DNA of 64,000 nucleotides from Diplonema japonicum (taxonomy: Eukaryota > Protista > Euglenozoa: Diplonemea), in assembly GCA_964019335.1 (NCBI GenBank), contig OZ025761.1, positions 62,001 through 126,000 of the forward strand. The letters run 5' to 3'. The position numbers were made by a program, and so were the translations under genes. The stretch's first letter is position 1. Each line of letters begins with the position of its first letter. Positions 4,278 to 14,516 of the stretch are shown piece after piece. The notes beneath the pieces were generated by a model. That model saw only the letters and a list, made by a program, of their open reading frames with translations, was not told the origin of the DNA and did not search any database.

Positions 4278-4892
4278 CTTTCACACACCAAATCGATTCT
4301 TGATGGACGCATCTGCACCAAAGTCCAAGAGCAAACGCGCAACACTTTCCTGCCCAAAGTAAGCAGCATGGTGCAGGGCGGTGTGATTGTTGTAGCCCGT
4401 CGGCTGCACATCTATCTCTGCGATGCCCCTTTCCAGGATAAGTTTCGTGCTTCTAACAAGCCCGCGGCAAGTTGTCATCAGAAGCAGCTCTGCGGCACAG
4501 GAGCCAATAATGTTTGCATCAGCCATTGCATCAACTACATTGTGTACCTCTGTGTCTTGTTCTGCCGTCCCTTGTGGGTGCAGGCGGCGCACATAGTTTA
4601 CTAAATGAGATGAAGTCCTGCCTGCCCACCCCAGATCCAGTAAGCGGCGCGTCCCAATTTTTTGGGTGTCCTGAACCACCTCCACCTCTGTCATCTCCTC
4701 AAATGGGTATTCTTGGACTAGGCGCCACTCATCCAGCAGCTCACCCTCGTGCCGCAGAGCTGTACACTCGCAATCCAGCGATGCTTGTGCAGCGATCCTT
4801 TCCTTCATCTGTACCACCGTCTCCGTCCCTACCACGTCGCACAGAATGGTCGTCGGGCCAGGCAGCCTTACCGCTATAGTGAATTCGGACAT
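4170..4892 (-). CDS. Ubl-domain + ankyrin-repeat protein, 2 exons (4289-4892, 4170-4231)
   Basis: Ubl-like N-terminus MSEFTIAVRLPGPTTILCDVVGTETVVQMKERIA; ankyrin TALHHAAYFGQESVARLLLDFGADASIKNRF. Removing GT..AG intron 4232-4288 restores NRFGETPLDHA, with TAG at 4170-4172. Confidence 0.85.
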
Positions 4893-5369
4893 TTTTTTTT
4901 TTCTTTCTTTTTTTTTTTTTTTTTTTGGTAGTGGGTGTAATAATTCACCTAAAAACAGCATGTGAACGCTTGCAGCGCCGAGTTTATATATATTCTTTTT
5001 TTTTTTTTTTTTTTTAAAAAATAAATTCTACTTCTTTTTCGACGGGTTTGCTGGATGGACCGTCGTTGCATTTTACGCCTGCGTCTTGATCTTGAGTTGC
5101 GACGAGATATTTATCAACTCTACTATGACCACACCAAAGCCACCCGAGGTGCCTGCTAATAAATATGATTCTGAAGTAAAGATGGACCTAAATCCCCCAC
5201 CTTGTTCAGAGCCCTGTACGTGTTCGGCATTCCCCTCTTTTTATCTCAGTTTTCCCTCGCGCTGAAGTAATTTCAGAGTGCCGTGACATTTTACCGAGGG
5301 CCCTGCGAAAAAAAATCGGCGTACTTCTAGTGGCGTTAAGGTCATTACTCGTTGGCATTAAATAGCTAT

Positions 5370-5685: not shown

Positions 5686-5898
5686 TTATTTTATCTCATT
5701 TTTATTTTATTTGTAAAAAGCTGTTCCTGTGATAGAGTTGATGGTTGGACCAAAGTAAAAAAAAAAAAAATAATAATTCTTTATGACTATATGTCTTTGT
5801 TGTAACAAAAAAAGAAAGAAAGAAAGAAAAGAATAGAAAAAAAAGATGTCTTTGAGGGAACCTGCAGTATGTGACAGGATCGCCTAACGACAATCAAC

Positions 5899-8800
5899 TC
5901 ATCTAGTGTTTGATCCCTTCTGTCGTGGTAGTGCCTTAGGCCCGTCGTAGTATCTTTTCAGCAGCTTGGGCGTGAAACCAACTAGCGAGTTGTTGAGGAT
6001 GCAATGAGTTCGTAACTGTTCCTCTAGGATAGGGTGGGTGACCTTCGGGGTTGCGAAGACCGGACGAGTGGAGTACCCATTGATGGGTTGGCTGTGGAGC
6101 CCTAGGGTACGCAAAGAGTGTACTGATTTCCTAGGTTCTGCTGGAATCAGGTGACTCCCCGTGCCTTTTTGGTGAATCCTGTCCAAAACTCTTAGGATTC
6201 CGCCGATTTTTCTTGCCCAGCTCGCTAGGTCTTCACCCTCCATGTGGATCCTTTCTGTTGCAATTAGGTCGACCGCAAGTTCCGCCTTGGACACCTGCCC
6301 ACCGTCCTTGCCCCACTTGAGGGCTTTCAGCCATTTGAGGATAAACGGGATTAGGCCTGGGAAGTACTTCTTCGCCAGCCCGTTCTTGTGGTACCAAGTG
6401 AGAGGTTTCGGGGTTAAGAGGTTCCCTGGCTGGAAAGGTCTATTCCAGAAGTGCTGGTTTTCGTACCTGACCTGCTTGTCGGCGTGCAGACAATCGAGTT
6501 TTCCTGCAATATCTGTAAGCATCAGGTGGAGTTCCTTGACTCTTGGCAGGCTGATGTCCGAGTCCGTTGTAATGATTCCGTGAATCTGGGTGCAGTTCGG
6601 CCAGCTCCTGTGTTCTTGCACCAGCCACTTGCGGTCGGCGTTGGCTGTCCTATAGCCGGCGTGTGCTGGACAGTGCCAAATGGTATGCTGCAGGAGGCTG
6701 CTGGTTCCATTCCTAACGTCGTAGAGTGCGTCACACCCGAGGCATTTCGCACGTGTGCCTGACAAATCGCCGTAGGCTCTGGGATGAAGGGGCAGTATGG
6801 CGCCAGTGATTGCACAAAGTAACTTTCTCGCTTTCTGCGGGTTGGCGACCGCCATCTCGTTGTGTAGGAGGTTCGTCCTCTCCTCGTCGATGCCCGTCTC
6901 GATCCCTCCAAAGGTCTCTCGCTCTTCGGCGAGCCCGCCACGTAGCTTGTCTTTCAACAGCGTTCTGATCTCATGCTTCAGGTGTTGTAAGCCTTGCGGC
7001 AGCATTTTCGTCTGAAGGTCCTTCCATCTGGTCCCAATGTCTCGAAGCCAAACCTCTGCATTGCCAAATGGTCCTTTCGGTAACGACGGTGTTCCGTTCC
7101 GTTCCTTCGTGTACCTGTAAGTTTCCCAGCATGAAACGAAGAGGGATTTGTTCGTCTGGCGTGTGCATAGACGCCCTAGGGTTGAAATGGCCTTGTAGAC
7201 CACCGTAGAGTAAGGGTCTAGGGTGTGACCTTTGTGGGCAATCCCCAGCAGAGCACTAGAGGAGCGCATCGGGTTGCGGGCCCCCCAGATACATAACGTG
7301 ATCTGTTTCTTCAGTTTCTCCAGCCAGGAGTCAGGGATTGGGTCGAAGAGTACGCCGTAGAAGGCGGACGGTAGGATGTTCTCAGAGATGATCTGTATCT
7401 TGCGATTGTGGTACAGTTTGGTCGCGGCGAGTCGTTCGACCTCTGCAAGGGCCTTGCGGACCCTTGAGTTCTCTCTCCTGCAGGGTTGGAAGTAGACCTG
7501 TACACCCAGTATTTGTAGCCTGTTGGAAGTGTCGAAGATCTCCCCGAATAACTGTACTTTGCCCTTGTACTTGGGTTTCGTCCCAAATGATCTGGTTTTC
7601 TTCGGGTGTATGGTCATCCCTGTGAGCTTGCATAGGCTGCCAAGCAGGTTGACGGAGCGTTGTATCGCGGCTTCTGATGTAGCTGACGTGAAGTTGAGGT
7701 CGTCTGCATACGACACAGGATGGGCGTTCCTCGGGTTCGCCGTGCATTTCCTGGTAAAGATGGCGAGGATCGCGTTGATGAAGATCGGTGAGATCGGGCA
7801 GCCCTGGAGTATCCCATTTGTGGTCCGGAATGGGGCGCCTACTCCCATTGGGAACCGTAAACGGCGGATCAGGTCAGAGTAAATGGACCTAATCGGTTTC
7901 AAAATGAGCCGGCTGAGGCCTAGACGTTCCACTAGTCCGAATGTTAGTGCATGGGGGACTGAATCGAAGCATTTCTTGAAGTCGACAGAAAGGCCATAGA
8001 GGTGCCTCCCCGACTCCTTCGCAATTTCTACACTGGTGCAGACCCGGGCGAGGAGGTCGTCTGTGCTGTGTTCCGGTCTGAAACCGAACTGGAGAGGGGT
8101 GATCCATGCTTCCTGCCACTCGAGGATTGCTGGTAGCCTCGCACCTGCCCATAGGCGGTAGAACGCGCTCGATACCGTAATAGGGCGGTGTTCTAGCGGC
8201 TCTTCGGATTCCCCTTTCGGGATCATCGTTACTAGAGCTGTGAGGACTGCCTTGGGCCAGCTCCCCCCCTCCTCTATCCAATCATATAGGAAGACGAACC
8301 CCTCCAACAATGCATCTGGTAAGTGAGCGAGTTCACACAATCTCCATCCGTCGATCCCTGCGCATTCTTGTTTCTCTTTCTTTTTCAGCACTTTCCGCAG
8401 GTCCTCCAGCGTGAGTGCGTGGTCCATCATCGGGTGGTGGGTGACCTGTGACCCAAACGTCTCTTCAAAAGCCGCGTAACTCGGCTCGGGGTGGTCTTCA
8501 AATTTCCTGAAGATATGGCGCCATTCCGACCTGAAAGCTTGGTCGATCTCCGCGACCGAGGATGAGAGTGTTCCATTCGAGTTCGACGCTACCAGTTCTC
8601 TCTCGGGCCTGTCTGCCACAAATTGCATGATGGCACTTCGATTCACCGAGAAGCCCGAATTCAGTTCTCTTCTCATTTTCACGCTGCGCTGGATTTTCGA
8701 CGCGATGTCCATGTCTCGTTGTTGTACAACCACTTTATTCAAAATCAGGTCTGCTTCTCTGGTGATGTTACCGTCAGAGAATGTTTCGGGGTGAACTCTC

Positions 8801-10539
8801 AAGAAGTTGATAGCTTTCGCCTTCATTTTGTCCCATCCCTTGCGCAGGTCGTAGGGCAGGGCTGGGTCTTTCAACTTCTGTACTCTTCGTATAATGGTGG
8901 ATGCACTTTGCCGGATTTTCTCAAGTGTCAGGTACCTCCTGGATACCGCCCCGAATCCGGTCGACGTGGAGGGGGCCGCGGATCTTCTCAAGCTGGGGTT
9001 ATTCACTTCGCCTCTGCCACTATAACTAGAAATCCCTGATTGTGCTGTGTCTCTCAGGAGGTGTTTCTCGCAGGCCGTAGAGAGTGCCAAGAATGCAGCA
9101 TCCAGGTCTCCGTTGTCTTTTAGAGCTCTCAATGTAGCATCTTCTCGGGTCCAGTCTCTGATCGTCAGTGAGTGGAGTTTCTCACCTCTCGCAATGAGTC
9201 TGGCTGTTGGTGGGGTAGCTGCCCGGATGAGCCATTTCGATCTGCCTATCTTGTCCATGTGACAAACGTTCCACCCGCATCCTGCCAGGTCCTCCCTCAG
9301 GTCGTATCCGTGCTCATGGTTGAGGCATCCTTCCAAAATATATTTTTCCCCCGCCTTCTGCAACGGGAGAAGGATGGGGTTGACCCTGGATAGGACCTCG
9401 TTGCGGTCTGCCCCTCTCGGCAACATGAGGGCCAACCCAATCGGTGTCACCGTGATGGAGGTGCCGAGTGATGCCAAGGGGACGTCGGCTGCTTTGATCC
9501 CCTTCTTCAGCTGGATGACCTCGAGCCGGTCCTTTGCGAATGCGTGTGTCCAGTAGACGCCTTGGTCCCCTGACGCTGCTAGCAGCCTGGTCGCGTGATC
9601 TGGGTCTACTCGTACAAGGGCGGTGGCTGTGTTGTTTTCAGTGGACCGGTCGATTCTGAACACGTTTTGCGGGACCACCTTGAAAGGACCTTCCTTGTCC
9701 CTCGCCGCAAGTAGTGCCATTCTTCTGATGGCATCGCCGTCCGCTGTACGCTTCCACTGTGCATCCGAGCAGTGGCCTTTTGCGATTATCGCCTTGAGAA
9801 TGGTTGTCCTGCTGCTACCCTCCTTGGGTGTGGCGTCCATGGCCTGCGGTAGGACCTCATCACCAGTGACAAAGGTCTTAACGACACCTCTCGAGGTGGG
9901 GGAGTCCGACTCGGTCCCGCCTACGAACGGTCGGGTGCTGACAATTTTAAAAGCAAGGCCGAGGGCCTTGAGGCGGGTGGAGAGCTCGACGGGGTCCGGG
10001 GGGTTGAAGTATATCCCTGCTGCGAGCTGGTCGGGGATCTCGTTGTGAACTTGCTGTCCCCAGTGCTGTTGGACCAGTGCTAAGGGGGGTTTGACAGGGG
10101 CCGGCCTGCTCGTCCAGTTGGTGGCAGCACCAAGGTATGACTTAGAGACTCTTGATGTCTTCCTCGGGGGAGTCCTCTTCTCCTGCGACGCTGGTTTCTG
10201 TTGCTGCTGTTTTTTCTGGGATTGCTGTTGTTGTGGTAGTCCTATGGACGTCTGTTGGCTCTGGTGTTGCTGCTGTTGGTATTGTTGTTGGAGCTGACGT
10301 GCCTGTTGGAATTGCTGGGGTGGTAGCTGCTGAGCCTGAGATTGTTGGAGAAGCGGCAGGGGCTGTTGTTGAGTTTGAGCCTGTAGGGGCTGCGGGGAGG
10401 ACGGCTGATGATTGGCCTGTGCCTTCTCGACTAGCTGTAGAACGCAGTCGAGGGTGGTCAGCACAAGGCTTTTGTTCTCCTCTGAGAGGTTGCCAGCTAG
10501 AAGGCGCTGGGCTCTCTGGACCAGCTGATGGGGGTCCAT
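5899..10539 (-). CDS. Non-LTR reverse transcriptase polyprotein (1546 aa)
   Basis: RT motifs GIDGW, IPKGE, RPITV, QFGFR, VDFKKCFDSV, GILQGCPISP, YADDL; C-terminal CxxC...HxxxxC knuckle (CLGC...HTIWHC); Q-rich N-terminus. Confidence 0.95.
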   Translation of the reverse strand: MDPHQLVQRAQRLLAGNLSEENKSLVLTTLDCVLQLVEKAQANHQPSSPQPLQAQTQQQPLPLLQQSQAQQLPPQQFQQARQLQQQYQQQQHQSQQTSIGLPQQQQSQKKQQQQKPASQEKRTPPRKTSRVSKSYLGAATNWTSRPAPVKPPLALVQQHWGQQVHNEIPDQLAAGIYFNPPDPVELSTRLKALGLAFKIVSTRPFVGGTESDSPTSRGVVKTFVTGDEVLPQAMDATPKEGSSRTTILKAIIAKGHCSDAQWKRTADGDAIRRMALLAARDKEGPFKVVPQNVFRIDRSTENNTATALVRVDPDHATRLLAASGDQGVYWTHAFAKDRLEVIQLKKGIKAADVPLASLGTSITVTPIGLALMLPRGADRNEVLSRVNPILLPLQKAGEKYILEGCLNHEHGYDLREDLAGCGWNVCHMDKIGRSKWLIRAATPPTARLIARGEKLHSLTIRDWTREDATLRALKDNGDLDAAFLALSTACEKHLLRDTAQSGISSYSGRGEVNNPSLRRSAAPSTSTGFGAVSRRYLTLEKIRQSASTIIRRVQKLKDPALPYDLRKGWDKMKAKAINFLRVHPETFSDGNITREADLILNKVVVQQRDMDIASKIQRSVKMRRELNSGFSVNRSAIMQFVADRPERELVASNSNGTLSSSVAEIDQAFRSEWRHIFRKFEDHPEPSYAAFEETFGSQVTHHPMMDHALTLEDLRKVLKKKEKQECAGIDGWRLCELAHLPDALLEGFVFLYDWIEEGGSWPKAVLTALVTMIPKGESEEPLEHRPITVSSAFYRLWAGARLPAILEWQEAWITPLQFGFRPEHSTDDLLARVCTSVEIAKESGRHLYGLSVDFKKCFDSVPHALTFGLVERLGLSRLILKPIRSIYSDLIRRLRFPMGVGAPFRTTNGILQGCPISPIFINAILAIFTRKCTANPRNAHPVSYADDLNFTSATSEAAIQRSVNLLGSLCKLTGMTIHPKKTRSFGTKPKYKGKVQLFGEIFDTSNRLQILGVQVYFQPCRRENSRVRKALAEVERLAATKLYHNRKIQIISENILPSAFYGVLFDPIPDSWLEKLKKQITLCIWGARNPMRSSSALLGIAHKGHTLDPYSTVVYKAISTLGRLCTRQTNKSLFVSCWETYRYTKERNGTPSLPKGPFGNAEVWLRDIGTRWKDLQTKMLPQGLQHLKHEIRTLLKDKLRGGLAEERETFGGIETGIDEERTNLLHNEMAVANPQKARKLLCAITGAILPLHPRAYGDLSGTRAKCLGCDALYDVRNGTSSLLQHTIWHCPAHAGYRTANADRKWLVQEHRSWPNCTQIHGIITTDSDISLPRVKELHLMLTDIAGKLDCLHADKQVRYENQHFWNRPFQPGNLLTPKPLTWYHKNGLAKKYFPGLIPFILKWLKALKWGKDGGQVSKAELAVDLIATERIHMEGEDLASWARKIGGILRVLDRIHQKGTGSHLIPAEPRKSVHSLRTLGLHSQPINGYSTRPVFATPKVTHPILEEQLRTHCILNNSLVGFTPKLLKRYYDGPKALPRQKGSNTR

Positions 10540-10787
10540 GTTTGGGCTGGTGGCGGGGTGGGATGTAGTAGGGAGGGGTTCACTTCAAAAAACTTATAAC
10601 TTCGTACTCCTATTCTGAACAACTTTTCAACCTTCCAACTTTCGACTGTTCACTGATATATTCCCTTTCACTTCACTTCCACTTCTCTCGATTGATCTCT
10701 GATATTCAACTTTCTACACTGCTGCTCGTGATTTCGATTTTATTTCTTTTCAAACCGCTCTACCTGGTTCCTTTATTGGCACGGTCG

Positions 10788-10829
10788 ATACCAATAAAGT
10801 ACAGAAACTGTAGCTTTAGAATCGTTGGT
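10788..10829 (-). ncRNA. Spliced-leader exon (38 nt) plus GTAT donor
   Basis: Minus strand reads ACCAACGATTCTAAAGCTACAGTTTCTGTACTTTATTG|GTAT. CAGTTTCTGTACTTTATTG is the conserved kinetoplastid/diplonemid SL 3' half, and the 5' half resembles the Diplonema SL. No downstream Sm site recognised. Confidence 0.9.
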
Positions 10830-11171
10830 AAAAAAAAAAAAGAAATCTTGCCTTTTCACTGGGTTTTGGTTTTCTTTTTTGGTTTTCACGCCACGACCTC
10901 CCGTTTCAGAGCTTCAGTCAACGAAGAGATATTAAGGCGATACCAGCTCGGTATGCTGGTTACGTTGAGTGGCATTTTTTGAAGTAAGTGTTAAAAGAAC
11001 GGGAAAGCGTTACAACATTGATAACGTGGGAATGGAGACAAAAAAAAAAAAAGAAAAAAGAAATACCATACAGATTCAGCATAATGAGGGAAATAACTGA
11101 TTATTCTGATGATAAGATATGTAAAAGTGAGATCCGCAGTTTTGTAGTGAGAGGGGGGGGGGGGGGGGGGG

Positions 11172-11477
11172 AATGGGGCTTTGATTGCAACACTAGGTGG
11201 TGTTAAGCGTTCAATGAAGCACGAACTACCTACTTGATTACAGGGGGTGCCGGCCGAGCAGTAGCTTCTTCTGCGTTCCGCGTCGTGTCCTTAATGCGTG
11301 CGGTGTGCTCAACCCTAGCCGGGGCGTCCCGGTTAACCAAGATTCTGCGCTCGTGCAGTTTGCTGCCTGTTCGTCACCCTGAGCATCTGCGTTACGTTCT
11401 TCCACTCGGGCGCTACCAGTGATGACCGACGAGATCTGATGTACTTCTTATATTTCCATGTTATCCCCACCACCTTG

Positions 11478-13424: not shown

Positions 13425-14516
13425 TTTTTGACTTTTTTTTTTTTTTTTTTTTTGTCGCTCCCTTTCTTTTTTTTTTTAAATTTGAATCTTTTGGAAATAA
13501 AACAAAAGAAAAGTTAGGTCGGGACCAAAAAAGAGAAAGATTGGTCATGGCTCGTTATTCTTCCTTTTGAGATCGAAAATGAGGAAATATATGTAAGTTA
13601 AAGTTAAGGAGGCCGGTGTTGGTAGCGCCCTGCACAAGAACTGTCTACTTGATTACAGGGGGTGCACCGCAGCCGAGTTGTAGCTTCTTCTGCGTTCCGC
13701 GCCGTGTCTTTAATGCGTGCTGTGTACAGCTCCGAAAAATAAAGGGGGAAGGGGATAAGAACGGAAAAGGAATAAGAAAAAGAAAGTGGAAAAGATAAAA
13801 GTTACTTCGCGAATCACTTTTTTGCAGGTTGTTGAAATGATTAATGGGAGAAAGGAGAGCGAGTAAAGAAAGAAATAGAAGAATTGATAAATTTCGGTAT
13901 TCGCGTGGCAAAACACTACAGTAACTTCTCACATTTCTTTTATGCCTCATTGGGGTTTAGCATGAAATGTAGCGAAGGGGAGCGAAAAACATGAAGTCGT
14001 GGCAGAAAGAAAATCTTCTAAAGAAAAGGAGACTATTTAAGGGTGCCTGCAGTATGTGGCAGGGCGCCCTAAAAAAATCTTCTAAAGAAGAAAAAAAAAA
14101 AAAAACACACACCATGGTCAGGGGAGCAATATGGAGATTATTGCCAACAAATTATGAGTCATTATTTAACTCGAGTTCCTGGATTTTTTGCACGAGGGCC
14201 CGCAATTATGGCCGTTTTGCGTTAAATTATGAGGCCCTTAGTGAGTGAAGAAAATGACGAAGAGTGAAATAAATTCTTTTTTTAAAAAAAGGAATTAACT
14301 GCCTCGTTTCACTTCGGTTCACAAATTCCTCTCCCAAGGGGGGTGGAGCGAAGTGAAGTGAAGAAGTTTTGCTTCAATTTTAGCCTATTTGCTTCATTTG
14401 GGGGTAATTTGGGTCCCCCTCCACCAGTCTCCAGAATTGCTCCCCCAGGGCGAAACATATTTGATTCACATTAAGAATCCTGGTCTGTTGTGAACGCGAG
14501 ACCTTCTTACGTGACC

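Follow-up and report, generated by a model that had tools for sequence, protein, structure and literature searches.

What is a DNA copy of the host's spliced leader (SL) doing at the 5′ end of a retrotransposon, and how is it kept there? We address this question in the diplonemid Diplonema japonicum, for a locus within a 64,000-nt stretch of contig OZ025761.1 (henceforth the window, to which all unprefixed coordinates refer). In euglenozoans every mRNA takes its cap from the SL, and to our knowledge Pol II promoters in this group are almost unknown outside the SL RNA gene. On the minus strand of positions 10771-10829, SL nucleotides 2-39 are followed by GT and then by a segment that pairs back onto the 3′ end of the SL (Table 1). 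The letters, and their position directly after a T-run, read exactly as quoted in an earlier interpretation made from the DNA letters alone (the sequence-only reading). A 23-nt SL core occurs once in the 64-kb window, with 0 occurrences expected, and the leader is of the diplonemid type, agreeing with the D. papillatum SL except around nt 11-16 (compared with the supplement of PMC10161547). This copy has a single SL, and no SL remnant truncated at an internal AG lies behind it. The head is co-oriented with and upstream of the reverse transcriptase (RT) ORF, as the sequence-only reading had it, at a distance of 290 nt (SL start to ATG) or 232 nt (hairpin end to ATG). Searches of the organism's own genome covered 62.5 Mb in 132 contigs.

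Table 1. Coordinates of the element and its head within the window.
Feature	Position	Strand	Remarks
12-nt T-run	10830-10841	minus	Abuts element 5′ end; target-site or tail signature of the element group
Host SL exon as DNA, nt 2-39 (lacks nt 1)	10792-10829	minus	Same as exon of true SL RNA genes
GT directly after SL exon	10790-10791	minus	Recreates the SL RNA 5′ splice-site context UUG|GU; from the sequence
12-bp hairpin	10771-10799	minus	RNAfold; covariation across head types I-III
Hairpin 5′ arm	10788-10799	minus	Last 8 SL nt + GUAU
Hairpin loop	10783-10787	minus	CGACC
Hairpin 3′ (anti-SL) arm	10771-10782	minus	GUGCCAAUAAAG
Conserved 92-nt head	10738-10829	minus	SL + 53-nt intron-like module ending ...CGGTTTGAAAAG + A-run
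Subfamily-specific 5′UTR body (B1)	10540-10737	minus	Only 3 genomic copies, SL head on all
Single 1546-aa ORF	5899-10539	minus	RT aa ~775-994; CCHC motif aa ~1266-1293; N-terminal ~460 aa without match
3′UTR/tail	5845-5898	minus	Ends ...CAAAGACATC; core motif in 542 genomic copies
T-run past 3′ end	5837-5844	minus	

The element behind the leader

The head belongs to a non-LTR retrotransposon of ~5.0 kb (5845-10829, minus strand). Its ORF contains an RT domain (PF00078, E 1e-23) and matches L1 ORF2p and R2 PDB structures by sequence, and the group has the marks of a LINE family: a LINE-type RT in a long ORF, variable 5′ truncation, and a common 3′ tail with 542 copies, among them mini copies and internally deleted derivatives. 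The nearest relatives of the ORF are APE-LINE transcripts and genes of protists, with 44% identity at best; three of them (P0002, P0004 and P0005) carry the APE domain PF03372, and the alignment to the window ORF begins at aa ~463. No PF03372 match was found in the window ORF even at E ≤ 10, its N-terminal third had no Pfam match, and aa 130-470 returned nothing usable from the protein atlas. The segment that stands in place of the relatives' APE endonuclease (aa 1-460; 9160-10539, minus strand) has a Q-rich start. A search for a C-terminal RLE nuclease gave a poor model of this region (pLDDT 57), mostly helical, and no fold match.

Whether a copy is full-length, internally deleted or a ~45-nt mini, T-runs flank it on either side. 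Because they bracket copies in this way, the T-run before the SL is the target or tail signature of the group; it marks insertion and is not an SL-related feature. Incidentally it supplies a polypyrimidine tract for internal AGs. At one locus (L054) another copy's 3′ end forms the upstream flank.

The majority of the 542 tail copies are minis of ~45 nt, all beginning at (TT)AGGCGATCC between two T-runs (L078, L079, L082, L083, L084 and L087). In another sample (run X7) the SL was joined at this same start point (joint 5887->10791). This start point, about 45 nt from the 3′ end, marks a place where the RT strongly tends to stop or switch. The tail motif recurs once more, in diverged form with 3 mismatches, at 14041-14063 (minus strand). 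Avoidance of internal T-runs, considered as a sign of T-run termination, was uninformative (0 observed vs 0.64 expected).

The surroundings of the element hold further repeats and genes. One repeat, which has ..GCAATCAAAGCCCCATT at its end and a C- or T-run behind it, is present at 11150-11300 (minus strand) and in the upstream flanks of L052 and L074, i.e., upstream of SL-headed copies. It probably represents the 3′ terminus of a different, homopolymer-tailed retroelement family. Just past the 3′ end of the element, a 226-aa ORF (4281-4961, minus strand) encodes a ubiquitin-like domain and ankyrin repeats and is presumably a host gene. Two isolated fragments of eukaryotic LSU rRNA, ~100-140 nt long (Rfam RF02543; 11835-11930 and 56558-56694, both minus strand), are similar to the dispersed 28S fragments described from D. 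papillatum.

Leader-headed copies and true SL RNA genes

The SL core has 227 genomic copies, six of which are true SL RNA genes (L057, two at L058, L061 and two at L062). These genes have a common upstream flank of ~43 nt, an exon beginning AACCAACG and an intron that begins GTACCCAATCTG, carries a terminal stem-loop and finishes with a T-run; the genes are arranged as ~350-bp tandem pairs adjoining 5S rRNA genes on two contigs (C15 and C59). The SL exon of the window is identical to theirs, and the sequences part after GTA. The sequence-only reading had foreseen that TGCCAATAAAG might simply belong to the native SL RNA intron of this species, and we found that the true genes carry a different intron. 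Similarity between the intron-like part of the head and the native intron was not significant (p 0.2-0.7, or 0.5-0.95 with the arm masked), and derivation of the head from the native SL intron was dropped on this ground.

One could nevertheless suppose that the locus is a genuine or decayed SL RNA gene with a LINE inserted in or beside it, as in SLACS or CRE: it has the SL exon in full, with GT and a stem behind it, and LINEs specific for SL genes are known from kinetoplastids and nematodes. However, none of the other hallmarks of the true genes was found here. The upstream promoter flank that they share is absent from all 15 heads of the window's type (type I), i.e., the window copy and 14 siblings, whose T-run flanks are unrelated and which continue into the LINE. 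In the window, a terminal stem-loop, a T-run ~100 nt past the exon and tandem or 5S linkage are all lacking, the head running instead into the 5′UTR and ORF, and no SL sequence follows the 3′ end of the element. The SL-gene explanation is thus already refuted, and we give it next to no probability.

How general is the head? Using an SL-anchored pattern, we found ~54 heads consisting of SL plus stem, which fall into three types: type I on 15 copies behind unrelated T-rich flanks, type II (GGTGTCCGACCGTGCCAATAAAG) on ~36 copies and type III (GGTCGCTCCCCGTGGCTGATAAAG) on 7. Types I and II, and likewise II and III, are homologous beyond the arm (p ≤ 0.001). The sequence-only reading named as a possible refutation that other full-length copies might have an AG acceptor where this one has the SL. 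When the type I intron-like segment was searched without the SL anchor, all 12 genomic copies carried the SL, as did all 10 matches to an SL-independent type II pattern, two old mutated copies included; no AG acceptor took the place of the SL in any of these 22 unanchored matches. The 15 type I heads and their flanks likewise bear out, family-wide, an SL that is encoded in DNA and sits at the element's 5′ edge. Among three type I subfamilies the 92-nt head is about 97-99% identical, compared with ~75% for the ORF, and the rest of the 5′UTR cannot be aligned; across these sequences the head is shown to be more conserved than the coding sequence. The window head is thus a real, heritable feature of the whole element group and not a one-off.

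Only one other full B1-type copy is present in the genome (L041/L066, C15:625761). It is 99% identical to the window copy over the first 454 nt, after which similarity ends, a break that points to a rearrangement or insertion in one of the two copies.

The SL core heads several unrelated retroelement families among the 227 copies, and GT follows the SL in ~157 of them. A ~1.4-kb non-autonomous derivative (L002/L081) is SL-headed and has the tail of the window element, whereas family e (L001, L007) and a single locus (L003) have other bodies. The most abundant SL-headed family, family b (SL|GTCGTTCGTG.., ORF MDPRRN..; L018:2-1357:-, L028:1696-2691:+), encodes an AlkB-type 2OG-Fe(II) oxygenase domain (PF13532, E 4e-14) and adjoins terminal repeat arrays, its sense strand directed outward. 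It is suggestive that a base demethylase should be encoded by an element whose RNA would carry the hypermethylated cap-4 leader. Many SL matches lie within 10 kb of contig ends, and the matches on C24 are spaced 10,659 bp apart. Three contig ends (L005, C2 right; L024, C11 right; L012, C5 left) carry an 8-mer array, (CCCGCAAA)n; as it runs 5′ to 3′ toward the end, the outward strand is C-rich, opposite to canonical telomerase repeats, and the repeat is not TTAGGG.

Hairpin, junction and the source of the leader

RNAfold predicts a 12-bp stem, CUUUAUUGGUAU / GUGCCAAUAAAG, closed by the loop CGACC (dG -14.9, z -3.89; 0 of 200 shuffles folded as well). From the letters, a stem had been proposed at the donor that works only on the sense strand, and this much stands, with 12 bp instead of 11 and two G.U pairs instead of one. 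Because two of its pairs are G.U, the antisense strand folds worse (dG -8.1 vs -13.5 for the sense strand). The same holds for type II (-11.6 sense, -10.1 antisense) and type III (-15.2 and -4.3), i.e., the sense strand folds better in every type, with 2-4 G.U pairs per type making the stem sense-specific.

Because a MAFFT alignment of the heads misplaced type III with respect to its structure, we took the pairs from each fold separately. Pair +3 is A-U, G.U or C-G depending on type, pair +4 is U.G or G.U, and type III has an extra C-G pair at +5; these compensatory changes sit on the only side that is free to vary. Counted over these three lineages only, conservation of the stem argues for selection on RNA structure in the element's own transcript. 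That the hairpin is kept by compensatory changes and is specific to the sense RNA is borne out by the folds of all three types. Rfam searches of the head at gathering and permissive thresholds returned no SL, ribozyme or other family.

In the predicted fold UUG|GU lies within the hairpin, as does the AG in which the 3′ arm ends, and it is plausible from this model that the hairpin masks the splice donor. The sequence-only reading proposed such masking, and also that the RNA may be treated like a mature mRNA. Pairing alone need not block a donor, however, because the donor region of the native SL RNA can also pair (7 bp) and yet this RNA is spliced. Nor is the hairpin required for carrying an SL, since two other families with an SL head (b and d) retain SL|GT and have no hairpin; among SL-headed families it is confined to the type I-III group, in which few copies have lost it (L072 and L073).

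The 3′ arm could also act in trans, as the sequence-only reading suggested in its alternative that the arm captures SL RNA. According to this explanation the arm recruits host SL RNA across the donor, for trans-splicing close beside the arm or for an RT template switch, and the cis hairpin is an after-image. The energetics fit for types I and II, whose arm pairs with the native donor region (CUUUAUUG|GUAC) at -16.9 kcal/mol, a pairing no weaker than that with their own 5′ arms (-15.9 and -13.8), and the 5′ G of this arm matches the native C at +4 better than the element's own U. By contrast, the type III arm is compensated for its own GUCGC and pairs well only in cis (-16.5, compared with -10.3 for native SL RNA), which argues against trans capture as the conserved role, and no copy has an AG before GTATCG. 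We consider such capture decidedly unlikely.

Where the leader itself comes from is best seen at its edges. In 37 of 48 contexts SL position 1 equals the flank, i.e., copies begin at SL nt 2; mismatches to the SL number 6 in 96 sites at nt 2-3 and 4 in 624 sites at nt 4-16. The 5′ A is also missing in D. papillatum RNA-seq, where the authors blame cap-4 modification (supplement of PMC10161547). Given that copies start at nt 2, matching this loss, they would have been made from RNAs with a capped SL 5′ end.

Several copies record trans-splicing onto an SL-headed RNA. Seven loci (including L017, L026 and L047) have the SL followed by TTTCTGTACTTTATTG, and C60 has the SL followed by CTACAG...TTATTG; these nested forms use the two AGs inside an encoded SL, and sibling copies of the window element with such relict SLs are L047, L092, L017 and L026. 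At L072 and L073 the SL is joined to GTAGAGCGG, which in the head directly follows ..AACCAG, and at L069 to TAGGAGTAC, which in the 5′UTR follows ..TTTGTCAG (..GTCAG); a junction after ..CTAG was found in other samples (contig-level data). These junctions in the genomic sequence show that SL-headed copies have been transcribed, sometimes trans-spliced at internal AGs, and re-inserted. They also bear on the claim that retention of GTAT points to the SL RNA or its gene rather than to a spliced mRNA, which is not supported: the intron-like part shows no significant similarity to the native intron, and GT after the SL is not by itself a sign of SL-gene origin, because an ordinary AG|GT acceptor (L072/L073) yields SL|GT as well.

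Could the head then be a passive relic, its element's mRNAs having been trans-spliced in the normal way and reverse transcribed in full, with hairpin and GT as accidents of the 5′UTR? Nested SLs and AG-exact junctions prove that such a pathway operates, unrelated families (b with its AlkB domain, d and e) are also SL-headed, and dispersed SL fragments in D. papillatum have been attributed to retroposition (supplement of PMC10161547). Against this, the head junction TTATTG|GT has no AG, no SL-less copy occurs among the 22 unanchored matches, the head is more conserved than the ORF and the stem covaries. Moreover, nested forms, which read-through and trans-splicing should produce from SL-headed parents, make up only ~3.5% of SL copies (at least 8 copies), while more than 90% keep one exact SL. 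A passive relic thus seems unlikely to us. Given that the assembly has no SL-less copies, the SL-headed copies themselves would be the sources; with such sources and an AG-less TTATTG|GT, the exact junction must be regenerated otherwise than by AG splicing.

The RT is also shown, from the copies it left, to switch templates onto SL RNA. At L060 and L064 a complete unspliced SL RNA (to ..CACTTTT) is followed by 1-3 A and the 5′ end of an internally deleted derivative of the window LINE, and L056 is a truncated chimera of the same kind. Further arrangements may be signs of RT template jumps between SL-bearing RNAs: L024 and L018 have tandem heads (SL + 45 nt + SL + body) and a 3′-truncated SL followed by a full SL. 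The window head is not a full-length chimera of SL RNA and LINE, since it differs from native SL RNA after GTA. It might still descend from an ancient one, i.e., a complete SL RNA captured by a template switch, as in U6/L1, and diverged since; its layout is SL-RNA-like (exon, GU and a stem involving the donor), present-day examples exist, and three loci (L016, L051 and L053) depart from the head at different points. Such descent is improbable in our judgement: the three head types share a module of their own, not the native intron, to which this module has no significant similarity.

Although the families themselves are very diverged, their SL exons are perfectly identical. Renewal of the exon from host RNAs that bear the SL, during reverse transcription, would fit this at least as well as inheritance through DNA. 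A family-specific 'CC' before the SL, considered as a marker of DNA inheritance, is non-discriminating, as it is also found on a nested copy (L047) with a newly added outer SL.

Our best explanation, which we regard as moderately probable when taken whole with its inferred steps, is that the feature is the 5′ head of a ~5.0-kb, T-run-inserting non-LTR retrotransposon, with SL, GU and a ~53-nt module forming a heritable unit. Each new copy would be made from an RNA with a capped SL 5′ end, as suggested by the stop at nt 2, where the RT would fail on cap-4. SL-headed copies would be their own source copies and would regenerate the exact SL|GU junction without an AG, most likely by transcription starting at the encoded SL from an internal promoter, by analogy with Pr77 (see below), and less likely by the RT taking up the SL anew from host RNAs that carry it. 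The hairpin would keep the recreated 5′ splice site and the adjacent AG from the splicing machinery, leaving the head intact. Against an internal promoter, no significant motif is common to the head and the native SL promoter; the one candidate, GGTTTG..AAAGA, was rejected as evidence (p 0.15-0.2).

A bolder version, which we offer tentatively and with more doubt than confidence, is that the head is a portable mimic of the SL RNA gene, in which Pol II initiates internally at the encoded SL, the LINE transcript has its leader (possibly including cap modifications) from the outset and the hairpin hides UUG|GU. If so, the LINE would bypass trans-splicing in a cell where every mRNA needs it, its leader would not be spliced away, and the exon would stay identical to the host's because host SL-specific factors must read it.

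Comparison with known systems

An SL that is a heritable and selected 5′ module would offer a natural handle on the roles of the SL and donor region in initiation, cap-4 formation and splice-site choice. The nested SLs and chimeras of SL RNA and LINE would be the first such record of retroposition in the diplonemid lineage, and the head might serve as a portable expression element in diplonemids, marine protists that are abundant and for which genetic tools are few. SL-headed retrotransposons would also explain dispersed SL fragments formerly dismissed as collateral damage. In D. papillatum, hundreds of SL exon pieces outside SL genes were ascribed to retrotransposon activity (supplement of PMC10161547); they were described as non-functional collateral fragments and were not connected with LINE 5′ ends, a hairpin, covariation or SL RNA chimeras (PMC10161547).

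SLACS, CRE1/2 and CZAR of trypanosomatids and NeSL-1 of nematodes occupy one fixed position within SL RNA genes, with a half of the gene on each side. The window element, like them, is a retrotransposon tied to SL sequence in a trans-splicing organism; unlike them, its group is dispersed in T-runs, has the whole exon at the 5′ end only and no SL in the 3′ flank, and has an RT closest to APE-type LINEs. Classification as a CRE/SLACS-type site-specific element was rejected for the complete exon at the 5′ side only, the T-run flanks and the lack of SL past the 3′ end.

Relict SLs of dinoflagellates (e.g., PMC5585692, PMC12014239) share with our case a DNA-encoded SL at the 5′ end and truncated relicts from trans-splicing at an internal AG. 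They mark retroposed host genes, however, and the relicts pile up, whereas here autonomous LINE families carry the SL together with a conserved module, more than 90% of copies having one exact SL. With regard to chimeras of snRNA and LINE such as U6/L1 (cf. PMC2104539, PMC13174262), L060 and L064, which contain full-length SL RNA, are their exact counterparts, but the window head is no copy of native SL RNA and is inherited and selected rather than dead on arrival.

A further likeness is to Pr77, the hallmark of trypanosomatid ingi/L1Tc LINEs, SINEs and SIDERs (PMC8190864, PMC1874656), a conserved LINE head that acts as a Pol II promoter with the SL-gene factors TBP and SNAP50 (PMC8190864) and is thought to solve the 5′-end problem under polycistronic transcription. 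Both are short 5′-terminal euglenozoan modules conserved across diverged autonomous and non-autonomous retroposons (here, a head ~97% identical against an ORF at ~75%, with types I-III homologous). Pr77 is not an SL, and its transcripts are unspliced and without SL. By contrast, in the module of the window the SL exon itself comes first, and there is an anti-SL hairpin besides. HDV-like ribozyme activity is a further mark of Pr77, and the head has no Rfam ribozyme match.
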